From NCBI GenBank assembly GCA_002269645.1, contig NIVC01002705.1:62001-126000 (forward strand): 64,000 nt of DNA, given 5' to 3'. Every line of letters starts with the position of its first letter. The first letter of the stretch is position 1. This document shows positions 5,814 to 64,000 of this stretch, piece by piece. The position numbers were made by a program, and so were the translations under genes. The stretch is from Macrostomum lignano. Its lineage: Eukaryota. The notes beneath the pieces are model-generated. The model saw only the letters and a program-made list of their open reading frames with translations. It searched no databases and was not told the origin of the DNA.

Positions 5814-6847
5814 TCAACAAGCTGGCGTCAGCAGGCACTCAAACGTCTGCATCGAGTAGTCAGGACTCAACGGGTACGCTGACCCGGCGTACACGTAGAC
5901 CAGACCTTTCCACTCCTGGCCTGAGGCCGTCAGATTCAGGGCTTCCGGTGGATAAAAATAAACACGGTTCGGATCGAAGCTGACACACGATCGGTACCAC
6001 CAGGCGCTGTTGTACATCCCAGCACACGAGGCGATGTTCAGGTCATTGTCCGAGTCGATAGTGGAGAACCTCATTCCGTCCATCGACCGACCGTCATCGA
6101 GTGGAACCTGACCGACATTCGATCGGGCGGTGTCCAGAGGGCCCATACTCACCCTGAACTTGTCAGACGCGTCCGACACTGAGAAGTGGGTGTTCTCAGC
6201 CCAGTACCAGGTCCCGTTCCAGTCGCTGAACTCCCATCGAACTCTGTAATTACCGTTTCTTGTGAGCTGGTGCAGCTTTTCCAGTCCGATCCAGAAGTTT
6301 GCATTCTCTCCCTGTCCGAACTCGGCCAGGTACTCGTTCCACCCTCGGGAAAATTGCCCTGATGCATCAACTCTGTGCTGGAACGTGGTCCAACAGTCTT
6401 TGATCTCTGGTATCTGTCTAATCTGCAATGAAATAAGAGTTCCTATCTGATCGGACGTGTAATCTTGCAGTAAAGTTCAGTAAGGACTGCTGTTCAGAGA
6501 CAAAGACTCACCCAAACGGTTGGCAATGAGCTGTTTCGGTGATTCCTACACTTCCTGCAGCCAGAACGTCCGAGCTTGCACTTGAACTGTCGGCAGGACC
6601 GGTCGGTTTCGGAGTAGGCGACTGCAGACACCTCGTCGTTTCGCTGGGCCTCAACAATGCAGGCCCAGGAAGTGTAGGGGACGGGACGGAGTCAACTTTG
6701 ACGGAGGCTTGGGACGGAGTCAACTTTGATTAGTAGGTATTCATCGAGATCTTCGTGGACGCTGGTGAAAGTTTTATCAGCGCTGATCAGGACAGAAACG
6801 CTGCAGAACAGCAGCACAGAAGCATAAAGCGTCTGCATAGCACGCAT
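5814..6847 (-). pseudogene. Secreted PAN/apple-like + fibrinogen C-terminal (FReD) protein with an in-frame TGA at codon 52; exons 6512..6847 and 5814..6422
   Basis: Exon 2 is a clear FBG domain (WTTFQHRVD..GWNEY..FG..NFWIGLEKLHQLT..FSTIDSDND..AWWYRSC). ATG 6847 opens a signal peptide (MRAMQTLYASVLLFCSVSVLISA). The same frame continues past TGA 6694-6692 as SWACIVEAQRNDEVSAVAYSETDRSCRQFKC to a phase-0 GTGAGT donor at 6511 that matches the CAG acceptor at 6423. Confidence 0.75.
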
Positions 6848-13820: not shown

Positions 13821-16800
13821 ATGCTAGACTTCTTCACCATATTCAGCCGGGGCGGCCTGGTGCTCTGGTGCTTCCCATCTACCAGCACTCTGTTCACCAG
13901 CTCTGTGAATGCGCTGATTCGCTCCGTGCTTCTACAGGAACGAGGCGGCGGCGGTGATGCGTTCTGTCACGAGTCTCTGGCGCTGCGGCACCGGCTAGAC
14001 AACGAATACGAGCTGGTGTTCGTTGTCTGCTACCAGAAGGTGCTGCAGCTCAACTATGTTGACAAGTTCCTTGACGATATTCATCGGGAATTCCGTGACA
14101 AGTACAAAAATGAGCTGACCAGCGGCCAGTTCGCTGCCGGATTTGACGACTTCCAGTCCGTCTACGCCCAGGTGCTGCAGGCCAGCGAGTCCGCCGCCCG
14201 GGCCAACGCCAAGCGGCCCAAGGAGATGCGCACCTACGTTGAATCCGAGAAGTCCAAGAAAACTGTCAGCTCAATGATTGTCGGAGCTGAGCAGCCCGCC
14301 GCCGCCTCCTCTGCTACCAAATCGGCGCCCGGCGCCAAGTCCGCTAAAAATGGCGCCAGCGCCAAGGCTCCGGCCAAGGCCAAGCCGGCGGCGCCAGCTG
14401 CCGAGTCAAAGAAGCCGACGGAGGCGCCACCAGCAGCGGCCGGGAGCAACGGCCAGCTGGATGAGGAGACCCGGCTGCGCAATCTGGAGCGGCTGGCCGC
14501 TAAGAAGCTCGGTGGCAAAGCCAGCAAGCAGCCGTCGCCCACAGCTGTTCCGAGCACGGGCTCGGAGACCGGGTCAGGCAAGCGGGTGAAGCAGAAGACT
14601 GTCTGGGCGGGCAGCAAGCTGTCCAGAGCCGAGATGGAGGCGCTGGACCGCAGCGACGATAAGCCGACAGGCCCGAATGGCGCCAGCGACGCCGGCGAAG
14701 CTGCCGCTGTGGCCGCCGCCGATCCGGCGCTGATAAAGCAGAAACGCGACATGATTGGCGACCTGAAGGAACTCAGCGTCCAGCCAGTCGATTCGGCCGA
14801 CGCCGGTGACGATGACAGCGACAGCGACGGGGCTGCTGACGCTGGCAACGCCGCGCCTGCGGCTGGTGGCAAAAGCGGCGGCGGCGGCCTATTCGGCATG
14901 TTCCGCGGTCTGGTTGGCTCGAAGACTTTGAACCGGGAGGATCTGGCGCCGGTGCTAGACAAGATGCGCGACCATCTGGTGGCTAAGAATGTTGCCGCTG
15001 AGATTGCCGGCAAGCTTTGCGACTCGGTGGCCGCCAGGCTGGAGGGCCGCACAGTTGGCGCCTTCTCCACCGTGGCCTCCACCGTCCGCTCGGCGATGAC
15101 GGACGCCTGCCTGCAGATTCTGAGTCCTCGCCGTCGGGTTGACATCCTGCGCGACGCTTTGGACGCCAAGGCGCGCGGCCGGCCCTACAGCATAGTGATG
15201 TGCGGCGTCAATGGTGTGGGCAAGAGTACTAATTTGGCTAAGATCGCCTTCTGGCTCATCGCCAATGGCTGCCGCGTGCTGATCGCCGCCTGCGACACGT
15301 TCCGGTCTGGCGCTGTTGAACAGCTGCGAACTCACGTGCGGCGTCTGGCTGCCGCGTATCCGCCTGGTAAGGACGGTGTGATAAATTATTATCAAGAGTA
15401 TTGACGTGTTTGTATGTACTAGTCAAAAATGACAAAAAGGTTGCACACTGAAAGACATGTCACACTGATTCTACTAGCACTGAGATTCAGGAATTCAGGT
15501 TATCACTGATGAGTTTAGCTCAAATAATACAGAAGGGTAGTTAGGTAAATAGGTGTTTAGGTGTGTACGTTGTTATATAGATGTAACAGGTAGATGTGTC
15601 TACAGGTAGCTGTGTAGCTGTGTAGGCAGGCAGGTAGGTATGTAGTTGTATAGGTAGGTATGTAATTGTGTAGGTAGGTATGTAATTGTGTAGGTAGGTA
15701 TGTAGTTGTGTAGGTAGGTATGTAGTTGTGTAGGTAGGTATGTAATTGTGTAGGTAGGTATGTAGTTGTGTAGGTAGGTATGTAGTTGTGTAGGTAGGTA
15801 TGTAGTTGTATAGGTAGGTATGTAATTGTGTAGGTAGGTATGTAATTGTGTAGGTAGGTATGTAGTTGTGTAGGTAGGTATGTAGTTGTGTAGGTAGGTA
15901 TGTAGTTGTGTAGGTAGGTAGGTAGTTGTGTAGGTAGGTATGTAGTTGTGTAGGTAGGTATGTAGTTGTGTAGGTAGGTATGTAGTTGTGTAGGCAGGTA
16001 TGTAGTTGTGTAGGTAGGTATGTAGTTGTGTAGGCACGTATGTAGTTGTGTAGGCAGGTATGTAGTTGTGTAGTAGGTATTTAGGTAGTTAGACATTACG
16101 AGTACATTACATTACGGCACCATAGTTGATTAGTAAGTCTGATTATTAATTCAATAACGTTTGGATTCTTTCTTATCGGCACAGGGGGTTGCTTACATTT
16201 GTCAGCCAAATAAGTTCGGTTGACAGCATTAGAGTTTCGATAAAAAACGATTCGAGAAGCAGTACTGGTCTGCGTTTTTTAATTCTGTATTTGGCATTTC
16301 ACAATCCCGAAAATTCGAAAGCTCGAGGCTTCAAAAAGTTGAAAATTATGAAACTCAAACCCCCCTAAACACAAAACTTCATAAACTCGAAGGCAATGCT
16401 TGAAAAACCTTCTTGACAAACAATGCTTCATAAACCCAAATCTTGGTAAACTCAAATCTTGATAAACTCAAATTAAGCTTCATAAACCCTAAGCTTGATG
16501 TACTCAAATCTTAATAAACTCAAAACTTCATAAACTCACTCAAATCTTGATAAACTCAAAGCTTCATAAGCTCACTCAGGTCTTGATAAACTCAAAGCTT
16601 CATAAGCTCACTCAAATCTTGATAAACTCAAAGCTTCATAAACTCACTCAAATCTTGATAAACTCAAAGCTTCATAAACTCACTCAAATCTTGATAAACT
16701 CAAAGCTTCATAAGCTCACTCAAATCTTGATAAACTCAAAGCTTCATAAACTCACTCAAATCTTGATAAACTCAAAGCTTCATAAACTCACTCAAATCTT

Positions 16801-17376
16801 GATAAACTCATAGCTTCATAAACTTGAAAGCAGTACTTAATAATCTAAGTATTCATACATTTCAAAACTTCATAAACATCCGCATGATACTACTCGCCAG
16901 AGTCGGACGGGTCCAGCTACGTGGAACTATACGAGAAAGGCTACGGCAAAGATCCGGCCGGGGTTGCCATGGAAGCGCTCAGGTACGCGTCTACTAAACG
17001 ATTCAACGTGTGCTTGATTGACACGGCCGGCCGGATGCAGGACAATGAGCCGCTGATGCGCGCCTTGGCTAAGCTGGTCAGCGTTAACGAGCCGGACCTG
17101 GTGCTCTTTGTCGGCGAAGCTCTCGTTGGCAACGAAGCCGTCGACCAGCTGGTGAAGTTCAACCAGTCCCTGGCTGACATGAGCCAGTCTGAACAGCCGC
17201 ACACCATTGACGGCATTGTGCTGACAAAATTCGACACAGTTGATGATCAGGTTGGTGCGGCTATTAGCATGACGTACATCACCGGACAGCCTATCGTGTT
17301 TGTGGGCACCGGACAGACCTACACGGATCTGAAGGCTCTGAGCGCTAGCGCCGTTGTCAACACTCTGCTGCGTTGA
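13821..17376 (+). CDS. SRPRA: Signal recognition particle receptor subunit alpha; join(13821..15366,16901..17376), 673 aa
   Basis: N-terminal [16 protein letters not shown] longin domain; [10 protein letters not shown]-loop, DTAGR and TKFD motifs of SRP GTPases. Phase-1 GT-AG intron 15367-16900 restores YPPE|[17 protein letters not shown]. Confidence 0.97.
15590..16085. repeat. 20-bp minisatellite (gtaggtaggtatgtagttgt) in the SRPRA intron
   Basis: Tandem copies visible. Confidence 0.95.
16440..16825. repeat. 36-bp minisatellite (ataaactcaaagcttcataaactcactcaaatcttg) in the SRPRA intron
   Basis: Tandem copies visible. Confidence 0.95.
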
Positions 17377-29601: not shown

Positions 29602-29854
29602 AATTGGTAGCAGAGCGTGCAATCCCAACACTCGACGACTACGACAATGGAAGACACCCAACGTCAACAACCTACATCAGACACTCCAGCAGCTTCTTCG
29701 GAGAACGCCATACCGGAACCGGTAGCGTCGGTACAACGCGCCACAATTAGACCACCGCCGTTCTACCGTCAAGCACCCGAGATTTGGTTCCGCCAACTCG
29801 AATCACAATTTACCCTGGCTGGAATCAGCTCCGCCAGCACCAAATTCCCACCCG

Positions 29855-31316
29855 GGGGCGCCAAGATCCGTCTTTTTTTCTCACCATATGAAGGGGCGAT
29901 GCCCACGGGCTGGAAGATGGTCGGACGATTCCGAGTCGAAGCAGCTTGTCAAACTCTTCCTTTGCAACAGTGAACTTTTCCGGTGACAGTGGTCGTGGTC
30001 GGCAGAAGATCGGCTCGCCTTCCGTTTCGATCGGATGTCGGACGCCTGTTGCGGATGGGGTCGTGTAGTCGGGCGCCTCTAGTACGCGTGGAAACTGGGT
30101 GAGCGGGTTTGATGGTTCCATTTCCGTTGTCACGTTGATTTGTGGAACTGGATCGGAAGAGCAGTTCAGGGCTGTGGATAATTCCGTTACTGGGTCTGTG
30201 ATGCGTCTCGACTTAAGGTCGATGATCAAACCGAACTTTACGAAGAAATCCGCTCCGAGAATCGGTGCCGTATTAGTGACGCTGAATGTTGCTGGGTATG
30301 GTCGCCGGAGCCCCGGAATAGAGAGAGTCAGACAGCATTGTCCAAAGGTACGGATCTCGTGTCCACCAATGCTGCGCAACTTCACGGGTGTCGGAGTAAG
30401 CAGATTTTGAGGGACGTACACGTACTGTAGAGGCAGGAGTGACCGTTCGGCTCCAGTGTCAACAATAAATGAAACCATGGTGCGAAGAACGTTGCAACGG
30501 AGTAACAAAGTGGTGGCCTTGCTCTGGTCACGGGTCGGCCAGGGCACGTGACCGACTAGTTTGAAGCACTTTCTAGAGTTGGGTTGTTTGCACGCGAGTG
30601 ATCTGGTGTTGTCTGGCGGCTGCTGAGCATCGTTGTGGGTTTGGGACCGGGCCATTTGCACCAAGGTCGGCACGTACGGGCTTGTGAAGCGTAGAATAGA
30701 TGGCCATTACAGATCTTAGGTCTCTTACGATAGGAGCGCTGTTGCCGGTGATCTCCTTCGTACGCCTGCCTAGGCTTGAACGCGCCGTGCGGTCTTGAAT
30801 CCCTGGCTTCGGACGTGCGCTGAATGGGTAAAAACGGAGTTCGGCTGCCCGCGACGGCTAACATGCTGTCGGCGATTTTGGCGAAGTCTTCTAGCGGAGA
30901 TTTTTCATGACCGACCAACGCAGAACGGATGTGCGTTGGGAGCGCCGTGAGCAGGCGTGACTTGATGATAGACTCGTCGGCTGCTAAACCCACTTCGATG
31001 AAGCGGCGCTTAATGTCAGTTACCAATTGCGAAGGGCGTTTGTCGCCGAGTTCTACTGCTGCAAGGGCTTCCTCGATACGCTGGTGGCGGTTGGCGCGCA
31101 GTGAGTCTAGAACAGCTGTTTTGAGTCGGTTGTATTCGACGATGTCTATGTCGATGTAGCAGGCAACATCCTCCGGGAGAGCGGCCAGTGCGTGGTGGAA
31201 TTTGGTGCTGGCGGAGCTGATTCCAGCCAGGGTAAATTGTGATTCGAGTTGGCGGAACCAAATCTCGGGTGCTTGACGGTAGAACGGCGGTGGTCTAATT
31301 GTGGCGCGTTGTACCG
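29855..31316 (-). pseudogene. Inverted gag - aspartic protease - RT N-terminus fragment
   Basis: Gag ORF 30556..31323 overlaps pol ORF 29825..30673 (FIVDTGAERSLL protease; PSSSPWASPLHMVRKKDGSWRP RT start), truncated right after WRP. Confidence 0.9.
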
Positions 31317-31606
31317 CCGCCACCGGAGACCCTTCCAGAGCCTACTGCTCCGCCTAATGATTCACCAGCCGCTAATACTCGTTCAAGAAGTTCTCGCCAT
31401 GTTCGATTTGCCTCTCAGCCGTCGATAAAATATTTTACACCTTGATTCTACACTTCTTGACTTGACTTGATTCTACACTCCTTGATTACACTTGACAATT
31501 TGATTCTAGAGAAGTAGCGCCATGAATCTGTTACCCCAAATTTCCCTCCTGCTAATTCGTTGTTTTAATCCTAGAAGTACTCCGTTATGGGGAAGGGGGA
31601 GTATCT

Positions 31607-45282: not shown

Positions 45283-46598
45283 ATGTCCTGTCTGAACCAG
45301 AGCTGGCACAGCATGCAACAGCCGGGCGGGAGCACCCAACTGGCTCTGGGCGCAGTAACTTGCGCTGTGATGTCACTAATCACCTTGGAGACCGTTGCCG
45401 GCAATCTACTGGTGATCGCATCCGTGATGAAATTCCGCAGACTGCACTCCCGCAACTGCTTCCTGCTGCTGGCCTCGCTAGCCTCTGCCGACGTCGCCAT
45501 CGGGCTGCTGGTGATGCCCTACTCGGCGCTGTACAGTTTCCTCGGCTGCTGGCCGCTCGGCGACTTCTACTGCAAATTCTTTCTCTCGGCCGACATCATG
45601 TGCTGCACGTCCAGCATCCTGCACCTGTGCCTCATCAGTCTGGACCGCTACATTGCCGTTACAAGTCCGCTGCACTACAAGTCCGCCGTTCGACCCCGCC
45701 GGATTTGGGCCGCCGTGGCCTTCGTCTGGTCAATCAGCATCGGCCTGAGCTTCGGCCCGGTGTTCTCCGGCACCTTCAGCTTTGAGCAGCGCATCGGCTC
45801 GGCTGCTGTCCCGTCCGCAGCTGAGAACGCGACCGCAAACGTCCCCGGGCAGTGCCAAATGTCCGTCAACCGTATCTATGCCGTGGTCTCTGCGCTGACC
45901 TCGTTCTTCCTGCCGCTGCTGGTGATGACCGCAGCCTACATCCGGGTGCACCGCATCGCCGCCGATCACTCGCAGGTCACCAGGCAAAGGAAGGCGGCCG
46001 CATCAGCCGGGACAGCTTCCGCCGCCGTGTCTCGCCAGATTAACAGCGAGTCCAAGGCTACTAAGACGCTTGGGCTGATTTTGGGTGAGTGCCGACTTGC
46101 ATCGTGTCTTTTTTGATGAATGGAAACCATGTCATTAGCACGGTTTCAAAGACAACTCAGCACCAAGATCACGCTATCAACATCGCAGGCTGCTTCTACG
46201 CCTGCTGGTTCCCGTTCTTCCTGATGTACATCGCCTGCCCGTTCACGCTGGACAACTGCTCCGGCCTGCCAGCCTGGGCGGTCACCCTGATCACGTGGAT
46301 CGGGTACGCCAACTCGGGCATCAACCCGCTGCTCTACGGCTCCAACCAGCGCGAATTCCGCCTGGCCTACCTGCGCCTGCTCGGCTGCCGTCGCGAGTCC
46401 GACCTGCGCTACCTGCGGTCGGACAGGCGCACCGCGCTCAGCTTGTACCGGCGCACCGCCGCCGGGCTGAGGCCGACTGGCACTGCCGACCTGCAGCTGC
46501 GTCGGGCCGCCGTCATCGCCGCCTGGGGTGTCGGCGCTACCCGGGTGCCGGCGGCGACAACTTCCATGGCGGCTAACAGCGGAGAGACTGCAGTCTGA
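45283..46598 (+). CDS. Biogenic amine GPCR (dopamine D1/octopamine/histamine H2-like); join(45283..46084,46189..46598), 403 aa
   Basis: TM3 Asp (ADIMCCTSSILHLCLISLDRY), TM5 serines (SALTSFFLP), KATKTLG, CWFPFF and NPLLY motifs; phase-1 GT-AG intron. Confidence 0.92.
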
Positions 46599-53815: not shown

Positions 53816-54524
53816 CCCGTCAGTCAGCAGTAGGTGACAGCAGAGACGAAGCTGCAGATGCAAAGTACGCCACACCCAAATTCAGAAATACTAAAAGAAT
53901 GAGCCACATAGCCAAATTTCTGAATCACACACCTGCCACACACAACGATGAGCATAATATTTTGAAGCATGCAATGTGCAGTTCTATTTGAATAAATATC
54001 ATTAAAATCTGGGATCACAAGTGGAATACAAAGGTGCACACGCCAAAGGAGGCACGGCCACTCACGGTACAATAGGAATTGAGAAGAAAATGCTTTTTCA
54101 AAAACAGAGGAATAGCGAGAACAATTAAAAGAAGACAATTTACAACAAAAAAAGCAAATAAAGACAAATATCAGTAATTAAAAATTCTAATTCTTAAATT
54201 AAAAAACGGCACAGATCGTTGTCCCACCGTGCTACTCACTGAAACAAAAATATAGTAGTAGTTACCGCATTTTAGAAGTACTAAAACAGCTTTAACTTGA
54301 CAACAAAACAGAGATTAAACAAGCATAATAAGACGAATTTATTTACCCACAATAAGCATAATTTAGCGGTACAATAATACAATAATTTAAGCATAATTAT
54401 TAAACTGCCCACAACAGTGAAGCAGGAAAGCAAAAGTCATGGAAACAAAACAGAAAAAAGTAAATGAAAAAAATTGTTTCAATTTTGACTGGAGAAGAAA
54501 ATTTGTAAACGTAAAGCAGATTTG

Positions 54525-54820
54525 TTAATCCCACACCCTCGGCCTGAGTTGGAGCTCAATCCCACACCCTCAGCCTGAGTTGGAGCTCAACCCCACACCC
54601 TCAGCCTGAGTTGGAGATCAATCCCACACCCTCAGCCTGAGTTGGAGTTCAATCCCACACCCTCAGCTTGAGTTGGAGTTCAATCCCACACCCTCAGCCT
54701 GAGTTGGAGTTCAATCCCACACCCTCAGCTTGAGTTGGAGCTCAACCCCACACCCTCAGCCTGAGTTGGAGATCAATCCCACACCCTCAGCTTGAGTTGG
54801 AGCTCAATCCCACACCTTCA
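54525..54820. repeat. 31-bp minisatellite directly after the PICK1 stop codon
   Basis: Unit aatcccacaccctcagcctgagttggagctc. Confidence 0.93.
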
Positions 54821-54821
54821 G

Positions 54822-57800
54822 TCAGCCCAGCTTCAGCAGCGGTTCATCTCCGCCAGGTGACTCGCTGCTGTTGGCGACCGCAGACACCGCGGCAGAGGCG
54901 GCGGGGGCGGCGGCAGCGGCGGGAGCGGCGGCGTCCCACGCGGCGAACGGCGCCTGAGGCGAGTCGCGGAACTCCCTGACGCCGGACCGGGGCTCGTCAG
55001 CGTCGTCCTCATCGTCCTCGTCCTCGTGCAGCGGAGTGGTGCTCTCATATTGGAAGCTGTTCTTGTTCAGGTCCATCTCGATTGGGAAGATTCTGCAGCC
55101 CTTCATCACTTCGCAGCAGTCATTGTGGTACTTGCTCATGGCCTGGACCAGGCACTGCAACTGGGACACCGTGTCCTGCACTGCATGGGCGAGGTGACGG
55201 CTATTGCGCGATGAACTGTAGATGTACTTTTAATAGTGAGACTTGATAATTTGATAGATTTGATAATTAATGAGAGAGATTGCAAATTTGATATTGGATG
55301 GATGAGATTCGATAGTGGGTGGGTGAGATTTCATATTGGGTGGGTGAGATTTAATATTGGGTGGGTGAGATTTAATATTGGGTGGGTGAGATTTAATATT
55401 GGGTGGGTGAGATTTAATATTGGGTGGGTGAGATTTAATATTGGGTGGGTGAGATTTCATATTGGGTGTATGAGATTTAATATTGGGTGGGTGAGATTTA
55501 ATATTGGGTGGGTGAGATTTAATATTGGGTGGGTGAGATTTCATATTGGGTGTATGAGATTTAATATTGGGTGGGTGAGATTTAATATTGGGTGGGTGAG
55601 ATTTCATATTGGGTGTATGAGATTTAATATTGGGTGGGTGAGATTTAATATTGGGTGGGTGAGATTTAATATTGGGTGGGTGAGATTTCATATTGGGTGG
55701 GTGAGATTTAATATTGGGTGGGTGAGATTTAATATTGGGTGGGTGAGATTTAATATTGGGTGGGTGAGATTTAATATTGGGTGGGTGAGATTTAATATTG
55801 GGTGGGTGAAATTTGATATTGGGTGTATGAGATTTAATATTGGGTGGGTGAGATTTAATATTGGGTGGGTGAGATTTAATATTGGGTGGGTGAGATTTAA
55901 TATTGGGTGGGTGAGATTTCATATTGGGTGGGTGAGGTTTAATATTGGGTGGGTGAGATTTCATATTGGGTGGGTGAGATTTAATATTGGGTGGGTGAGA
56001 TTTAATATTGGGTGGGTGAGATTTAATATTGGGTGGGTGAGATTTAATATTGGGTGGGTGAAATTTAATATTGGGTGGGTGAGGTTTAATATTGGGTGGG
56101 TGAGATTTAATATTGGGTGGGTGAAATTTGATATTGGGTGTATGAGATTTAATATTGGGTGGGTGAGATTTAATATTGGGTGGGTGAGATTTAATATTGG
56201 GTGGGTGAGATTTAATATTGGGTGGGTGAAATTTGATATTGGGTGGGTGAGATTTAATATTGGGTGGGTGAAATTTGATATTGGGTGTATGAGATTTAAT
56301 ATTGGGTGGGTGAGATTTCATATTGGGTGGGTGAGATTTAATATTGGGTGGGTGAGATTTAATATTGGGTGGGTGAAATTTGATATTGGGTGTATGAGAT
56401 TTAATATTGGGTGGGTGAGATTTAATATTAGGTGGGTGAGATTTAATATTGGGTGGGTGAGATTTAATATTGGGTGGGTGAGATTTAATATTGGGTGGGT
56501 GAGATTTGATATTGGGTGGGTGAGATTTCATATTGGGTGGGTGAGATTTAATATTGGGTGGGTGAGATTTGATACTGGGTGGGTGAGATTTGATATCGGA
56601 TGATGAGATTTGATATTGGGTGTATGTGATTTAATATTGGGTGGGTGAGATTTCATATTCGGTGGGTGAGATTTCATATTGGGTGGGTGAGATTGAAAAT
56701 CAGTAAGTGAGATTTGTACTGGGTGTATGAGATTTGATATTGGGTGGGTGAGATTTGATATCGGATGATGAGATTTGATATTGGGGGGTGAGATTTGATC
56801 GAAATTAAAGAAGTCAGAATTGGAAGTCGCCGCTCACCGTGCTTGTTGTCCAGCAGCTCGATCTTCACCAGCACATCATTGCGCATCTTGGCAAACCGGC
56901 TTCTGGCTTCCTGACGGCAGCGGAGGATCAGCCTGAGCAGGGAATACAGTGGGATGTGGGATCTTAGTAAGTACAATAGCTATTCCGAGACTCATAACAG
57001 CCTCACCTATTCTCATAACAGCCTCACCTGTACTCATAACAGCCTCACCTGTACTCACAACAGCCTCACCTGTACTCACAACAGCCTCACCTGTACTCAT
57101 AACAGCCTCACCTGTACTCATAATTCCCGGTCTCCACCCGATAAAGCGGCTCCTGAAGCGCGGCAAAGCTGTACTCTTCATCATCCATTTCTTTCACTTT
57201 GAGACAGTAGGACTGCAATTTTGAGGTGTGAAGTTTTCAAACATCAAATTCCGTATCATTATTAGTTGCATCGAAACAAATACTCGAACAAACAACTCAC
57301 CAAATATTCGAATTTGCAATCCAGATATTTCTTTACAGTCAGTCGAGTGTCGGGCACCACTTTAGTCAGGAATGTGTTCATATCGCTGATCATCTGTTGC
57401 GAGAATTGGAGGGATTTGAAGAGGATCCATAAGATTGGGATTTGAGTAGTTAGACTAGGATTTGAGTAATGAGATTTGGGATTTGAGTAATGAGATTAGG
57501 ATTTGAGTAATGAGATTTGGGATTTGAGTAATGAGATTTGGGATTTGAGTAATGAGATTTGGGATTTGAGTAGTTAGACTAGGATTTGAGTAATGAGATT
57601 AGGGATTTGAGTAATGAGATTAGGATTTGAGTAATGAGATTTAGGATTTGAGTAATGAGATTTGGGATTTGAGTAGTTAGACTAGGATTTGAGCAATGAG
57701 ATTAGGATTTGAGTAATGAGATTTAGGATTTGAGTAATGAGATTTGGGATTTGAGTAATGAGATTTGGGATTTGAGTAATGAGATTTGGGATTTGAGTAA

Positions 57801-60800
57801 TGAGATTTGGGATTTGAGCAATGAGATTTGGGATTTGAGTAATGAGATTTGGGATTTGAGAAATGAGATTTGGGATTTGAGTAATGAGATTTCGGATTCA
57901 AGTAATGATATTGGCATATAAGTTCTAAATAAGCCATCATAATAGGAGCCTCCAATCGCTTAAAAAACATACTCCCAGCCATACAGGAATGCGGGCCTCA
58001 CAAAACTGGTACTAAATAATAATGACTGACGCGGGAATTACCGGTAAGTTGGCCAAAGACAAACTGAGTTTTATTTCTACAGCAAACAATCTGGCAGGGA
58101 AGAGGCGTTAGCTTAGTTTATAAAAACCCCGGTTTGCCTGTTCTGCAAACAAAAATGTTCTGTGGATCCAGAAAGATATAGCAGCAGCAGCACCCACCGG
58201 CTTCACAGTCTTCAAGCACTCGATGGCCGCCTGCTCCATCCTGCGGTGAGTCCCGCCAAACTGGGTGAACGCCTCCGAGGCCCTCGGCTGCGGCTCCTTC
58301 ACCCCGACCTCAGACAGAATCTCGCCGAACACCCGCTGCACCTGGCTGAGCCGATAAAAAGCCTTAATTAAGGACTTAGTCTGGTTCATCAGGCCGAAGA
58401 ACATCCCGGCTGTCCGGTTCATCTCGTCCAGCTTCTTCAGTAGGCCGTCTGGAGCAGGGATTTGGGAAACTTAGAATAGTTAAGACTGGCTTTCAATAAT
58501 AGTATTCATATTCATATTTTACCAGAGACCGGCACAACACGAGACAATTATTGATGGCAGGATTATAGCTAAATGAATTCGATATCTATTTAAAACAACT
58601 GCAACCCGAATCTACGATATTTCATATGCTATTTCATAAAATGGTAATGTCACCAACCTCGAAATGTCATAAGCTGGAAATCTCATAGAACGGAAATCTC
58701 ACTAGATGGAAATCCCACTAGATGGAAATCCCAGTAGATGGAAATCTCACTAGCTGGAAATCCCACTAGATGGAAATCTCACAAGCTGGAAATCTCACTA
58801 GATGGAAATCTCAGTAGATGGAAATCTCACTAGCTGGAAATCCCACTAGATGGAAATCTCACAAGCTGGAAATCTCACAAGCTGGAAATCCCACTAGATG
58901 GAAATCTCACAATTTGGAAATCTCACAAGCTGGAATTCTCATAGAATGGAAATCTCACTAGATAGAAATCTCACAAGCTGGAAATCTCACAAGCTGGAAA
59001 TCCCACTAGATGGAAATCTCACAATCTGGAAATCTCACAAGCTGGAATTCTCATAGAATGGAAATCTCACTAGATAGAAATCTCACAAGCTGGAAATCTC
59101 ACAAGCTGGAAATCTCACAAGCTGGAAATCCCACTAGATGGAAATATCACAATCTGGAAATCTCACAAGCTGGAATTCTCATAGAATGGAAATCTCACTA
59201 GATAGAAATCTCACAAGCTGGAAATCTCACAAGCTGGAAATCCCACTAGATGGAAATCTCACAATCTGGAAATCTCACAAGCTGGAATTCTCATAGAATG
59301 GAAATCTCACTAGATAGAAATCTCACAAGCTGAAAATCTCACAAGCTGGAAATCCCAATAGATGGAAATCTCACAATCTGGAAATCTCACAAGCTGGAAT
59401 TCTCATAGAATGGAAATCTCACTAGATAGAAATCTCACAAGCTGGAAATCTCACAAGCTGGAAATCCCACTAGATGGAAATCTCACAATCTGGAAATCTC
59501 ACAAGCTGGAATTCTCATAGAATGGAAATCTCACTAGATAGAAATCTCACAAGCTGGAAATCTCACAAGCTGGAAATCTCACAAGCTGGAAATCCCACTA
59601 GATGGAAATCTCACAATCTGGAAATCTCACAAGCTGGAATTCTCATAGAATGGAAATCTCACTAGATAGAAATCTCACAAGCTGGAAATCTCACAAGCTG
59701 GAAATCCCACTAGATGGAAATCTCACAATCTGGAAATCTCACAAGCTGGAATTCTCATAGAATGGAAATCTCACTAGATAGAAATCTCACAAGCTGGAAA
59801 TCTCACTAGCTGGAAATCCCACTAGATGGAAATCTCACAAGCTGGAAATCTCACAAGCTAAAAATCTGTATACTGCAGCTAACACCCATGTATTGTTATA
59901 TAGAAATGTAGTGAAATTTCTGCAATTTTGTTAGTCATTTGTTGTCTATCTAAACCAAATGATTAGGTTTCATTATTTGAACGAATTTCATATCCGGTTG
60001 TAAAAGTCACAATCTGATTGTGTTGCTGAGATGCCAAGCGTCAAAGGGTTAGTGAAGCCATGGCTTAAAGGGAGGCTCAAAGATGGAAATCTCACAAGCT
60101 GGAAATCTCACAAGATGGAAACCTCACTAGATGGAAATCTCACAAGACGGAAATATCACAAGCTGGAAATCTCAAACTCAAAATCTCATAAACGGGAAAT
60201 CTTATAGACTGAAAATCTCACAAATTGGAAATCGTACAAGCAGGAAATCTCATGAGCTGGAAATCTCATTAGAAATTTCACAAGCTGGAAATCGTACAAG
60301 CAGGAAATCTCATGAGCTGGAAATCTCATTAGAAATTTCACAAGCTGGAAATCTCACAAACTGAAAATCTCAAAAGTAGGAAATCTCATAAATGGGAAAT
60401 CTCATAAACGGGAAATCTCATAAACGGGAAATCTCAAAAACTGGAAACCTGAAGACCTCATGCCGAAACCACAATCAAAACAACATCATAATTATTTAGC
60501 AAAATCCACAACAACAAAGGAAAATAACACAGAGAAGACCAGACTGCCTTCGTGAACCAAACTCTCATTGCAGTCCGATATTTTCCAGGACCACGGCGTG
60601 GTTGGCGCTTATTCTACTCGTAGTAGAAGGGGGCATCGATTGCGCTAAATTAAAATTTACGAGCTGCAGTCAGAACAGCGTGGACCATGGGGGCGTCTGT
60701 CAGCGGGCGATTGACGGAATCACCGACAGCACATTCAGCCGAGGCAGCTGCACCCACACCCAGAGGAGAACTTTCGGGGGCTGGTGGACCGGCTTCTTTG

Positions 60801-63484
60801 CGGCAAGTATTTGCGGGAATTCGGGGAAATACGGAGCTAGCGTTCACGGGAATTTGAAGCTAGCGTTCACGGAAATCCGGAGCTAGCGTTCACGGGAATT
60901 TGGAGCTAGCGTTCACGGAAATTTGGAGCTAGCGTTCACGGAAATAAGGAGCTAGCGTTCACGGGAATTTGGAGCTAGCGTTCAGGAGAATTTGGAGCTA
61001 GCGTTAAGGGGAATTTGGAGCTAGCGTTCACGGAAGTTTGGAGCTAGCGTTAAGGGGAATTTGGAGCTAGCGTTCAGGGGAATTTGGAGCTAGCGTTCAC
61101 GGAAGTTTGGAGCTAGCGTTCACGGGAACTTGGAGCTAGAATTCATGGGAATTTGAGGCTACTATTCACAAGACTTTAAAGCTAATATTCACAAGACTTT
61201 AAAGCTAATATTCACAAGAATTTAAAGCTACTATTCACAAGACTTTGAAGCTACTATTCACAAGAAGCAACGGATCGGTATATGTAATTCACAAGACTTC
61301 AGAGCTCACGGGCATTGGAAGCTAGTGTTCATGGAAACTCTCGAATAACTCGCAGCATTGGAGTAACAACAAAGATCATTCTATACACCCAACTCGAACA
61401 GGGAGAGGTCAGCGTGGCCAATGTGACCGTGTGGAACAGGCAGGACTGCTGCCCAGACAGACTGGACGATTTTGACCTGTCAATCGGCGGCTCCGTGTGC
61501 CAGCACTCAGCCTCCCTGGCCAGCAAGGCTTGGGCTACGCTGGACTGCCGGGGACTGCGAGGCGACAGCGTTACCATAGCAACTAAATTAAAGGAGGCGT
61601 TGACGCTATGCGAAGTGGAAGTCTACGGCGAATATTCAGGTGAAAATGTTGAGCAGACTGCGGCGCGAGAGTGAAACAAGTACCATTCAATTACAAAGAA
61701 AGTAGGCATTCACTACACAAGGACAACAGGTACTTTGACAGAGAAAAAGCAATTTCCGAAGGTAAAAGTAATCGGTAAGTTTTAAATTTCAGTCAGTATT
61801 CTTTTCTCAAATATCCAAACTATCCTACTATAAGTAGCGGAGAAGAAAAACTAAGCGCTATATTTTGTGTGTACAACAAATAAAAAGAAAAGTGCACAAC
61901 AGTCAGGTCAAACCGTTGCACAGAATGGCCCGGCTAAGGCCCAGAGCGTCAGCCGTGTCGTTGGACATGTTCTCAACAACCTTGTGCTTCACTTTCTTCA
62001 GTACTTTAATTATATACGGTTTGCATGGCGAAGCGGGTTATGCTATTATTTAGCAACTATCCAGTGAAACTACATCTAGCATGTAAATGTACTTTTACAC
62101 CGCGCACCGAAACCCGTCCTGTGCCAGCAGCCCAGTGCGCAATCAAACAAAAATATACAAGTTATGATTTACCACCAAAAATCATTTCAGTCAAGCCCTA
62201 GAAAAAAACGATTGAAAAGGGACAAAGATTCGAGAAATGAATAGAAAATTGGAATTGAAATTTGAAAATATTTTATGGTCAGGTTGGAAATCTTACCGTT
62301 GACCAGCACGGCTCTGGAGAGGCCGAGGCCGTCCGCGGTCGAGCTGGACATTGTATCCACTACCCTGTGCTTCGCCTTCTTAAGGACTTTAATAGTTTTC
62401 AAGGGTGCGCCAAGAGTGACATGTACAACGGCAACTTAAATGCTTGAACATTAATAAATTAATTACATAAATTTGTAACGCCTAAAAAGCAGAAGGGCGA
62501 TTTTAAAAATAGATGTGACATGAAGCCAAAAGAATGATATCGTTAAGGTTGTGGTTGTGGTTTCCCTGATGAATTTCGAGAGGGAAAAATAGGATAGGGT
62601 AGGAAAGAGAGGGGTAGGAGAGAGGTAGGAGAGAGGGGTAGGAGATATAAGGGTAGGAGAGACAGGGGTAGGAGAGGGGTAGGAGAGATAAGGGTAGGAG
62701 AGACAGGGGTAGGAGAAGGGTAGGAGAGATAAGGGTAGGAGAGACAGGGGTAGGAGAGACAGGGGTAGGAGAGACAGGGGTAGGAGAGACAGGGGTAGGA
62801 GAGACAGGGGTAGGAGAGACAGGGTTAGGAAAGACAGGGGTAGGAGAGACAGGGGTAGGAAAGACAGGGGTAGGAAAGACAGGGGTAGGAAAGACAGGGG
62901 TAGGAGAGACAGGGGTAGGAGAGGGGTAGGAGAGGGGTAGGAGAGACAGGGGTAGGAAAGACAGGGGTAGGAGAGACAGGAGTAGGAGAGACAGGGGTAG
63001 GAGAGACAGGGGTAGGAGAGACAGGGTTAGGAAAGACAGGGGTAGGAGAGACAGGGGTAGGAAAGACAGGGGTAGGAAAGACAGGGGTAGGAGAGGGGTA
63101 GGAGAGACAGGGGTAGGAGAGGGGTAGGAGAGACAGGGGTAAGAGAGGGGTAGGAGAGGGTAGGAGAGGGGTAGGAGTGAGAGAATGCGGAAGGCAGGTA
63201 TCATGAATATTAATTCAAAACCTAAATTAAAGAATCCGGTATCAAGTGATTCAACACAAAATGCAATGTTATCGGAGTTGCCATGTTCATGTCAATTATT
63301 AGGCTGCACTGCAAAAATACTTCAACGGAAGATAAAAATAGCATACCGTAATAAATGAAATAGGCTATTAATAACAATAATTCTCAATAAATGCCGTTAA
63401 AACATTTTCCCACTTACTGATATCCAAACTCTTGCCCTGCTTTGGATCGGCATGCAAGCAGTTGTAACCGATGGTGACCGCGCC
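54822..63484 (-). CDS. PICK1: PICK1 (PDZ + BAR/arfaptin homology), 5'-partial. Exons 63418..63484, [62297..62386 and/or 61914..62003], 58198..58448, 57301..57393, 57112..57212, 56838..56932, 54822..55180
   Basis: The spliced translation matches PICK1: ADPKQGKSLDIILKKVKH..TADALGLSRAILCNDGL..EPQPRASEAF..KFEYLSYCLKVKEMDDEEY..GNYEYRLILRCRQEAR..FPIEMDL plus an acidic tail. All introns are GT-AG with compatible phases. Confidence 0.95.
55290..56800. repeat. 21-bp minisatellite (ttaatattgggtgggtgagat) in a PICK1 intron
   Basis: Tandem copies visible. Confidence 0.97.
56990..57122. repeat. 21-bp minisatellite made of a PICK1 exon end plus its splice donor
   Basis: Minus strand tatgagtacag|gtgaggctgt x6. 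Confidence 0.95.
57430..57900. repeat. 21-bp minisatellite (ggatttgagtaatgagatttg) in a PICK1 intron
   Basis: Tandem copies visible. Confidence 0.95.
58660..59865. repeat. 16-bp minisatellite (ggaaatctcacaagct) with 112/128-bp higher-order repeats
   Basis: The marker ggaattctcataga recurs at 58932, 59044, 59172, 59284, 59396, 59508, 59636 and 59748. Confidence 0.95.
60031..61674 (+). CDS. F-type lectin (fucolectin/FTP domain), secreted, nested antisense in a PICK1 intron; join(60031..60047,60574..60802,61402..61674), 172 aa
   Basis: RAIDG..SCTHT..WW..V.V.NRQDCCPDRL..LTLCEVEVYG with the H..RxDxxxxR fucose-binding triad; signal-like TAWLALILLVVEG. The short first exon (ATG 60031, GTTAGT donor) is inferred; the second intron needs a GC donor. 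Confidence 0.85.
60080..60450. repeat. Degenerate 16-bp ggaaatctca array in F-lectin intron 1
   Basis: Same family as 58660-59865. Confidence 0.85.
60825..61270. repeat. 23-bp minisatellite (ggagctagcgttcacgggaattt) in F-lectin intron 2
   Basis: Tandem copies, degenerating to AT-rich variants. Confidence 0.92.
61914..62003 (-). other. PICK1: Duplicated PICK1 exon (copy B), 90 nt, phase 1-1
   Basis: ttaaag|TA CTG AAG AAA GTG AAG CAC..CTG TGC AAC G|gtttga = ILKKVKHKVVENMSNDTADALGLSRAILCN; paralogous to copy A at 62297..62386. Confidence 0.9.
62600..63180. repeat. 15-bp G-rich minisatellite (aggggtaggagagac) in a PICK1 intron
   Basis: Tandem copies visible. Confidence 0.95.
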
Positions 63485-63524
63485 CTGCAATGCCGGGTGC
63501 GGGCTCAAGTATGTGTACAGCGGC

Positions 63525-64000
63525 AGCTGTCACCCTAGCATCAGCAGCAGCTGTCACCCCAACATCAGCAGCTGTCACCCCAACATCAGCACCAGCTGTC
63601 ACCCCAACATCAGCAGCTGTCACCCCAACATCAGCAGCAACTGTCACCCCAACATCAGCAGCTGTCACCCCAACATCAGCACCAGCTGTCACCCCAACAT
63701 CAGCAGCAGCTGTCACCCCAACATCAGCACCAGCTGTCACCCCAACATCAGCAGCAGCTGTCACCCCAACATCAGCAGCATTCGTCACCCCAACATCAGC
63801 AGCAGCTGTCACCCCAACATCAGCAGCATTCGTCACCCCAACATCAGCAGCAGCTGTCACCCCAACATCAGCAGCAGCTGTCACCCCAACATCAGCACCA
63901 GCTGTCACCCCAACATCAGCACCAGCTGTCACCCCAACATCAGCAGCAGCTGTCAACCCAACATCAGCAGCATCCGTCACCCCAACATCAGCAGCAGCAT
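63525..64000. repeat. 24/21-bp minisatellite (cagcagcagctgtcaccccaacat) in a PICK1 intron, running off the window
   Basis: Tandem copies visible. Confidence 0.95.

Follow-up and report, generated by a model that had tools for sequence, protein, structure and literature searches.

Does the PICK1 gene on the minus strand of the 64,000-nucleotide stretch of DNA analysed here (the window, to which all positions refer unless another sequence is named) encode a single linker between its PDZ and BAR domains, or two versions that can replace each other? The question is raised by two homologous exons, A and B, which adjoin inside one intron of this gene and which the initial annotation had interpreted as a tandem duplication with probable mutually exclusive splicing. 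We assign a probability of roughly 0.5 to the reading that A and B are substitution-type alternative exons, their use in splicing, their alternation and the functional difference between their products all being predicted from the nucleotide sequence. The 90-nt PICK1 exon that corresponds to human residues 117-146 was duplicated in tandem in this macrostomid lineage, and according to this reading both copies would have been retained as working exons, each replacing the other with full or nearly full mutual exclusivity. Two PICK1 isoforms would then come from a single gene, with differences at 9 of the 30 residues of this part of the PDZ-BAR linker and with different functions, either in curvature sensing or in PDZ-BAR coupling.

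Exon A (62297..62386, minus strand, 90 nt) encodes (I)LKKAKHRVVDTMSSSTADGLGLSRAVLVN and is bounded by the acceptor attaaag and the donor gtaaga; exon B (61914..62003, minus strand, 90 nt) encodes (I)LKKVKHKVVENMSNDTADALGLSRAILCN and has the same acceptor sequence, attaaag, with the donor gtttga. They are separated by an AT-rich intron of 293 nt (62004..62296, minus strand, 37% GC) without tandem repeats. Exon A reads tc CTT AAG AAG GCG ... GTC AAC g and exon B reads ta CTG AAG AAA GTG ... TGC AAC g, so that the phase of both is identical (2 nt, 29 codons and 1 nt). The constitutive exon upstream (63418..63484, minus strand, cag acceptor, gtaagt donor) encodes the last part of the PDZ region and the first residues of the helix (GAVTIGYNCLHADPKQGKSLDI plus the first base of codon 117), ends with ..SLDI and an A at 63418, and is the same at 20 of 20 residues in PICK1 of Macrostomum lignano. 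Its final A and the first two nucleotides of a copy form Ile117, as ATC with A and as ATA with B. The next constitutive exon (58198..58448, minus strand) begins with AC GGC CTA.. (D-GLLKKLDEM) and encodes the start of BAR helix 1 (D-GLLKKLDEMNRTAG...TVKP); its AC and the final g of either copy give GAC, the codon of the invariant Asp147. The two open, same-phase exons with AG and GT borders and the junctions that flank them were thus reproduced to the base on the minus strand as the initial annotation had described them.

A and B are identical at 62 of 90 nucleotides (69%) and encode the same amino acid in 20 of their 29 whole codons (69%), of which nine are identical and 11 differ synonymously; the other nine change the amino acid. 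When the peptide of either copy was compared with the 64-kb window by tblastn, the other copy was found at E = 8e-11 and nothing else, showing no third copy of the exon, and a repeat search returned a single 99-nt direct repeat (72%) that spans the exon, the donor GT and 7 nt of the acceptor. The likeness of A and B is far beyond chance, and the assembled exons, tblastn and the direct repeat all bear out the tandem duplication. An artefact of assembly or of haplotypes was considered and rejected, because the copies are merely 69% identical. A heptamer, ACCTGAC, lies 3' of both donors (minus strand), at +13 after A (62284-62278) and at +6 after B (61908-61902); it could be a remnant of the duplication, a site for a splicing factor or a product of chance.

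The gene is PICK1. The spliced product matched Pfam Arfaptin with 246 bits when it contained B and 241 bits when it contained A, and Pfam BAR with 33 bits. The Arfaptin match begins at model position 2-3, and the duplicated exon therefore accounts for the first 30 residues of the arfaptin-homology domain. The best database relative was a cluster with M. lignano PICK1 (PAA49277.1 / UniRef A0A267GQ44), with 85% identity over 282 residues; all other phyla stood at 58-69%, and annotated PICK1 proteins of many phyla at 60-69%. The window is on this ground assigned to a macrostomid flatworm other than M. lignano. The window covers the 3' two-thirds of the gene, including the last exon of the PDZ region (GAVTIGYN..), and the 5' PDZ exons lie past position 64000. 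All the introns are GT-AG.

In vertebrate PICK1 the motif LKKVKHRL begins at L118, which is the basis of the numbering used here, and the duplicated exon encodes human residues 117-146, that is, most of the amphipathic helix (including V121 and L125) and the whole connector with its invariant TADALGLSRAIL linker. According to PMC8884907, which cites Herlo et al. 2018, V121 and L125 are the residues mutated in curvature-sensing-deficient PICK1, and the V121E-L125E change, which affects the N-BAR amphipathic helix, yields a fission-incompetent protein. It is exactly the region of this helix that the exon pair encodes. For the orthologue from M. lignano, an AlphaFold2 model (mean predicted local distance difference test score, pLDDT, 73.5) shows a helix at residues 99-112 that corresponds to human 114-127 (pLDDT ~63-69) and is followed by a short helix (116-121), a low-confidence connector and BAR helix 1 from residue 133. 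The view of the initial annotation that the exon encodes the linker helix agrees with this model and with the presence of positions 121 and 125, with the refinement that the helix begins at LDI in the upstream exon and is not wholly inside the duplicated one.

Both copies keep the basic face of the helix (K119, K120, K122, H123 and R/K124) and its hydrophobic residues (I117, L118, A/V121, V125, V126 and M129). Every other PICK1 examined has this helix once per gene, whereas the gene in the window has two variants, which differ from each other at position 121 (Ala or Val), in the 127-132 loop and at positions 136, 143 and 145 of an otherwise invariant linker. The candidates for a functional difference between A and B are Ala/Val121 on the hydrophobic face, the 127-132 turn with its charge and polarity (DTMSSS in A, ENMSND in B) and the connector, with G136, V143 and V145 in A and A136, I143 and C145 in B.

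Whether both copies have been maintained by selection was addressed through the ratio of nonsynonymous to synonymous change between them, a comparison proposed in the initial annotation. The proportions of synonymous (pS) and nonsynonymous (pN) differences according to Nei and Gojobori (NG86) were 0.60 and 0.22, with an omega of ~0.21 and near-saturated synonymous sites; the neighbouring 249-nt exon compared with that of M. lignano gave a pS of 0.45, a pN of 0.11 and an omega of 0.18. When the 27 observed differences were placed at random, nine or fewer amino acid changes were obtained in 2e-5 to 2e-4 of the trials. A model in which one copy had been neutral since the duplication had a probability of ~0.03 in a simulation conditioned on the synonymous divergence and limited to substitutions, and simulated omega values of 0.2/0.2 or 0.1/0.3 reproduced the data. 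Purifying selection, which had been read from the pattern of divergence, is thus in agreement with both types of simulation. Moreover, local alignment of the introns flanking A with those flanking B was no better than that of shuffled sequences, and the parts preserved amid these diverged flanks were the exon, the donor GT and the 7-nt acceptor attaaag. The G+C content at third codon positions was 0.83 in A and 0.76 in B, within the range of the other PICK1 exons (0.55-0.84), and the surrounding introns have 37-47% GC. Every strictly invariant residue among 67 distinct homologous segments is kept in A and B; B is canonical at all constrained sites, and A deviates at three near-invariant positions (E127D, A136G and I143V), always conservatively.

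These data bear directly on the alternative that one of the copies, either A or B, is a dead or dying pseudo-exon that is never or hardly spliced in. The absence of stop codons and indels despite near-saturated synonymous divergence, the omega of ~0.2, the persistence of exon-type third positions amid AT-rich introns and of splice dinucleotides and acceptor motif amid fully diverged flanks, the conservative nature of the changes in A and the agreement of B with the metazoan consensus at each constrained site all speak against such a copy. The three deviations of A could nevertheless reflect relaxation, neutrality of one copy is rejected at no better than P ~0.03 with 29 codons (on which all the selection tests rest), leaving room for a recent inactivation, and a single copy suffices in M. 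lignano and in three neodermatans. The splice sites are also compatible with decay. The AAG acceptors of A and B both lack a pyrimidine tract, and the donor of B (gtttga), the weakest of the gene, matches the consensus at four of nine positions. Taking both sides together, we regard a pseudo-exon as unlikely and the constraint on both copies as working exons as a reasonable, though not conclusive, interpretation of several independent signals that are each modest by themselves.

We tentatively consider, as a possibility well short of even odds, that A and B form a regulated tissue- or stage-specific switch of the curvature-sensing helix and the TADALGLSRAIL(C/V)N linker.

The duplication is lineage-specific and absent from the relatives examined. 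All three M. lignano loci, as well as Schistosoma, Clonorchis, Taenia and one mammal, have a single copy of this 90-nt exon with identical borders, and no second copy was detectable in the introns of the relatives at tblastn E <= 1-10, nor was a remnant of one found in the 820-nt downstream intron of M. lignano. The PICK1 gene of M. lignano has the same exon boundaries as that of the window, and its single exon (VLKKAKHRVVESMSSTTADALGLSRAILVN) is identical to A at 24 of 30 residues and to B at 23 of 30; unlike the copies in the window, it has a strong pyrimidine tract and a CAG acceptor. The three M. lignano loci (NIVC01000616.1, NIVC01003922.1 and NIVC01000201.1) encode an identical 440-aa PICK1 and have an identical exon and flanks; the gene spans 37, 18 and 16 kb, respectively, and an RRM-domain gene was called upstream of it in NIVC01000616.1 and NIVC01003922.1. 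No conserved intronic elements were found between the window and M. lignano, since the exons alone align.

Searches of proteins pointed in the same direction. An A+B query, which favours doubled proteins, was used to rank 1457 PICK1-like proteins; the doubled exon was found only in Tupaia chinensis, and none had a diverged doubled linker. The Tupaia gene model contains two tandem copies of the homologous 90-nt exon, which the annotation splices together (..ILCN-V-VLKK..). The two copies (KB320903.1, 13802-13891 and 14002-14091) and their flanks are 100% identical over a tandem repeat of 200 bp in a draft assembly, and this doubling is most likely an artefact of assembly or annotation, or otherwise a very recent event, and not a diverged and selected pair. 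Full-length and 131-aa A+B queries against a collection of 5.8 billion proteins recovered no protein with two diverged copies. In the literature searched, PICK1 and mutually exclusive exons were only incidentally mentioned together. The remark of the initial annotation that it knew of no such arrangement described for PICK1 is supported by these searches, and within the limits of the proteins, the four flatworm genomes and the papers that they covered, the exon duplication is a novelty for PICK1.

The polarity of the change is less simple than had been proposed. B was initially described as the ancestral-like copy and A as having lost the Val and the Cys, and this holds against the pan-metazoan majority only, as Val121, Asn128 and Cys145 of B are the majority states of other phyla. 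However, the Ala121 of A is present in M. lignano, Clonorchis, ticks and echinoderms, and its Val145 (ILVND) in M. lignano and all the neodermatan flatworms examined, so that A carries flatworm-typical residues at both positions; B, for its part, has two novel loop residues (N131 and D132). Judging from these comparisons, the real peculiarities of A are E127D, A136G and I143V rather than positions 121 and 145. When compared with M. lignano, A had a pN of 0.10 and B of 0.18. The pS between the copies (0.60, ~21 synonymous sites) is not below the pS between the species in the neighbouring exon (0.45, ~56 sites), which would place the duplication at about the time of the split from M. lignano or before it, although the errors of the two values overlap. 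If it is older, M. lignano would have lost one copy.

The pair has the sequence features by which mutually exclusive exons are predicted in Kassiopeia (Pillmann, Hatje and Kollmar; PMC3923563): A and B adjoin, are homologous and equally long, are read in the same frame and have compatible GT-AG sites. At the RNA level, Hatje et al. 2017 (PMC5740500) require splice-junction reads that connect each exon with the flanking ones and none that join the two. Three further observations favour substitution of one copy by the other. Each copy is conserved over its full length, including the ends that rely on canonical neighbours, as the helix begins in the upstream exon and the invariant Asp147 is formed only at the junction of a copy with the exon that starts at 58448, the A-B junction giving Val. 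As said, none of the 1457 proteins is a PICK1 whose linker is doubled and diverged. Finally, A and B have the only AAG acceptors among the eight of the gene, and B has its weakest donor, whereas the orthologous single exon has CAG or TAG acceptors in four other flatworms; this would fit exons whose splicing is regulated and not constitutive.

It could instead be that both copies are constitutive, in which case the protein would repeat 30 residues internally and have two amphipathic helices and two linkers in a row between PDZ and BAR. The A-B junction (..AVLVN-V-LKKVKHK..) is in frame, the 293-nt intron is ordinary, the donor of A is strong and no device that would enforce exclusivity was found; Kassiopeia itself contains constitutive exons that satisfy all the criteria for mutually exclusive ones (PMC3923563). 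The slight relaxation of A falls in its C-terminal half, which doubling would move away from the BAR domain. The N-terminal half of B and the C-terminal half of A would, however, stand in non-canonical contexts, yet their invariant residues are kept; Asp147 after A would turn into Val, and the only doubled protein among the 1457 is the Tupaia model with its perfect assembly repeat. We consider this arrangement improbable, and we think no better of a variant of it in which one copy is constitutive and the other a cassette, giving the canonical isoform and one with 30 additional residues, without substitution. The in-frame length of 90 nt permits such extra inclusion, weak AAG acceptors like these are a usual feature of regulated exons, and similar neighbouring exons are often differentially included without being exclusive (PMC5740500). 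Nevertheless, the conservation arguments raised against the doubled protein apply here as well, and neither A nor B has splice sites of clearly constitutive grade.

Substitution with a functional difference has in turn several observations against it, besides the possible relaxation of A and the small number of codons already mentioned. Joint inclusion (30 additional residues) and joint skipping (..SLDI-N-GLLKK..) both keep the frame, and nonsense-mediated decay would thus be unable to enforce exclusivity. With 293 nt, the A-B intron exceeds the length at which steric exclusion could act, and U2/U12 incompatibility does not apply, the donors gtaaga and gtttga and the aag acceptors all being U2-type. 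The 601-nt region folded no better than its shuffles (minimum free energy z = -0.5). The best duplex between the A-B intron and the downstream intron, which would loop out B, reached -39.3 kcal/mol, compared with -33.0 +/- 3.2 in block-shuffles, but was matched by 7 of 100 of these (p ~0.07) and was not significant. Mutual exclusivity is missing in many cases of similar neighbouring exons (Hatje et al. 2017, PMC5740500), and the A+B queries of the 5.8-billion-protein collection returned nothing from the window's own species. Finally, the 18-mers beginning with LDI have practically the same hydrophobic moment (0.309 with A and 0.307 with B) and equal mean hydrophobicity, so that the different membrane binding of the isoforms foreseen in the initial annotation finds no expression in this measure.

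Other structural signals were noted in the same region. Short inverted repeats were at chance level, including a 16-nt stretch with 81% complementarity to the donor of A (61768-61783). A GC-rich local hairpin (62098-62143, minus strand, ~-21 kcal/mol, stem GCGCAC.../...GUGCGC) lies in the otherwise AT-rich A-B intron, ~100-140 nt upstream of B, and its long-range pairing with 61440-61563, downstream of B, was not significant (7 of 100 block-shuffles). No Rfam family was matched in 54000-64000.

Tandem-duplicated mutually exclusive exons have been catalogued in Kassiopeia (PMC3923563), in a human set (PMC5740500) and by Martinez-Gomez et al. (PMC8373072, PMC9741552). Like the pair described here, they are neighbouring homologues of the same length and phase with conserved GT-AG borders that encode the same structural element, and purifying selection acts on both copies. 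The pair in the window differs in being known from sequence alone, in having a length that is a multiple of three and hence no frameshift safeguard, and in that the analysis detected neither competing RNA structures nor a steric constraint nor U2/U12 incompatibility. It is also a young, lineage-specific event, whereas the catalogued human events are described as mostly ancient in PMC9741552.

The remaining PICK1 exons of the window, all on the minus strand, are at 57301-57393, 57112-57212, 56838-56932 and 54822-55180, the last one containing the stop codon. Between 54527 and 63998, every PICK1 intron of the window except the 293-nt A-B intron has a long minisatellite array, for example 21 nt x72 at 55286-56796, 21 nt x23 at 57435-57912, 48/112 nt at 58641-59854, 23 nt at 60833-61266, 15 nt x40 at 62597-63158 and 24 nt x20 at 63518-63998, and a 31-nt x9.5 array directly follows the stop codon (54527-54821). 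Elsewhere in the window we found a gene for the alpha-subunit of the signal recognition particle (SRP) receptor with two large exons on the plus strand (13821-15404 and 16921-17376; Pfam SRP-alpha_N, SRP54_N and SRP54 GTPase, with the GTPase domain lying partly on each of the two open reading frames), a rhodopsin-family G-protein-coupled receptor (45283-46598, plus strand; 7tm_1, 150 bits, divided over two open reading frames), an open reading frame with a fibrinogen C-terminal domain (5814-6428, minus strand, 126 bits) and overlapping DUF7041 open reading frames (29825-31323, minus strand) that resemble a remnant of a retroelement gag-pol.

Isoform diversity is well known to arise through tandem exon duplication with substitution-type splicing, and the interest of this locus lies in its location rather than in the mechanism: the PDZ-BAR linker of PICK1, with its experimentally defined curvature-sensing helix. 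The 14-residue linker motif is almost constant between flatworms and mammals, yet two versions of it are maintained in one lineage. The conservative changes E127D, A136G and I143V in one of these versions point to residues that may tune, and not abolish, the function, making A and B a compact natural pair of variants of a tractable membrane-sensing element. A pair of this kind is liable to be merged or dropped by annotation pipelines. If the proposed switch is true, a motif that is fixed in all the other animals examined would be alternated in this lineage, and the gene would make two PICK1 proteins differing in curvature sensing or in PDZ-BAR autoinhibition, which would amount to a natural isoform experiment.

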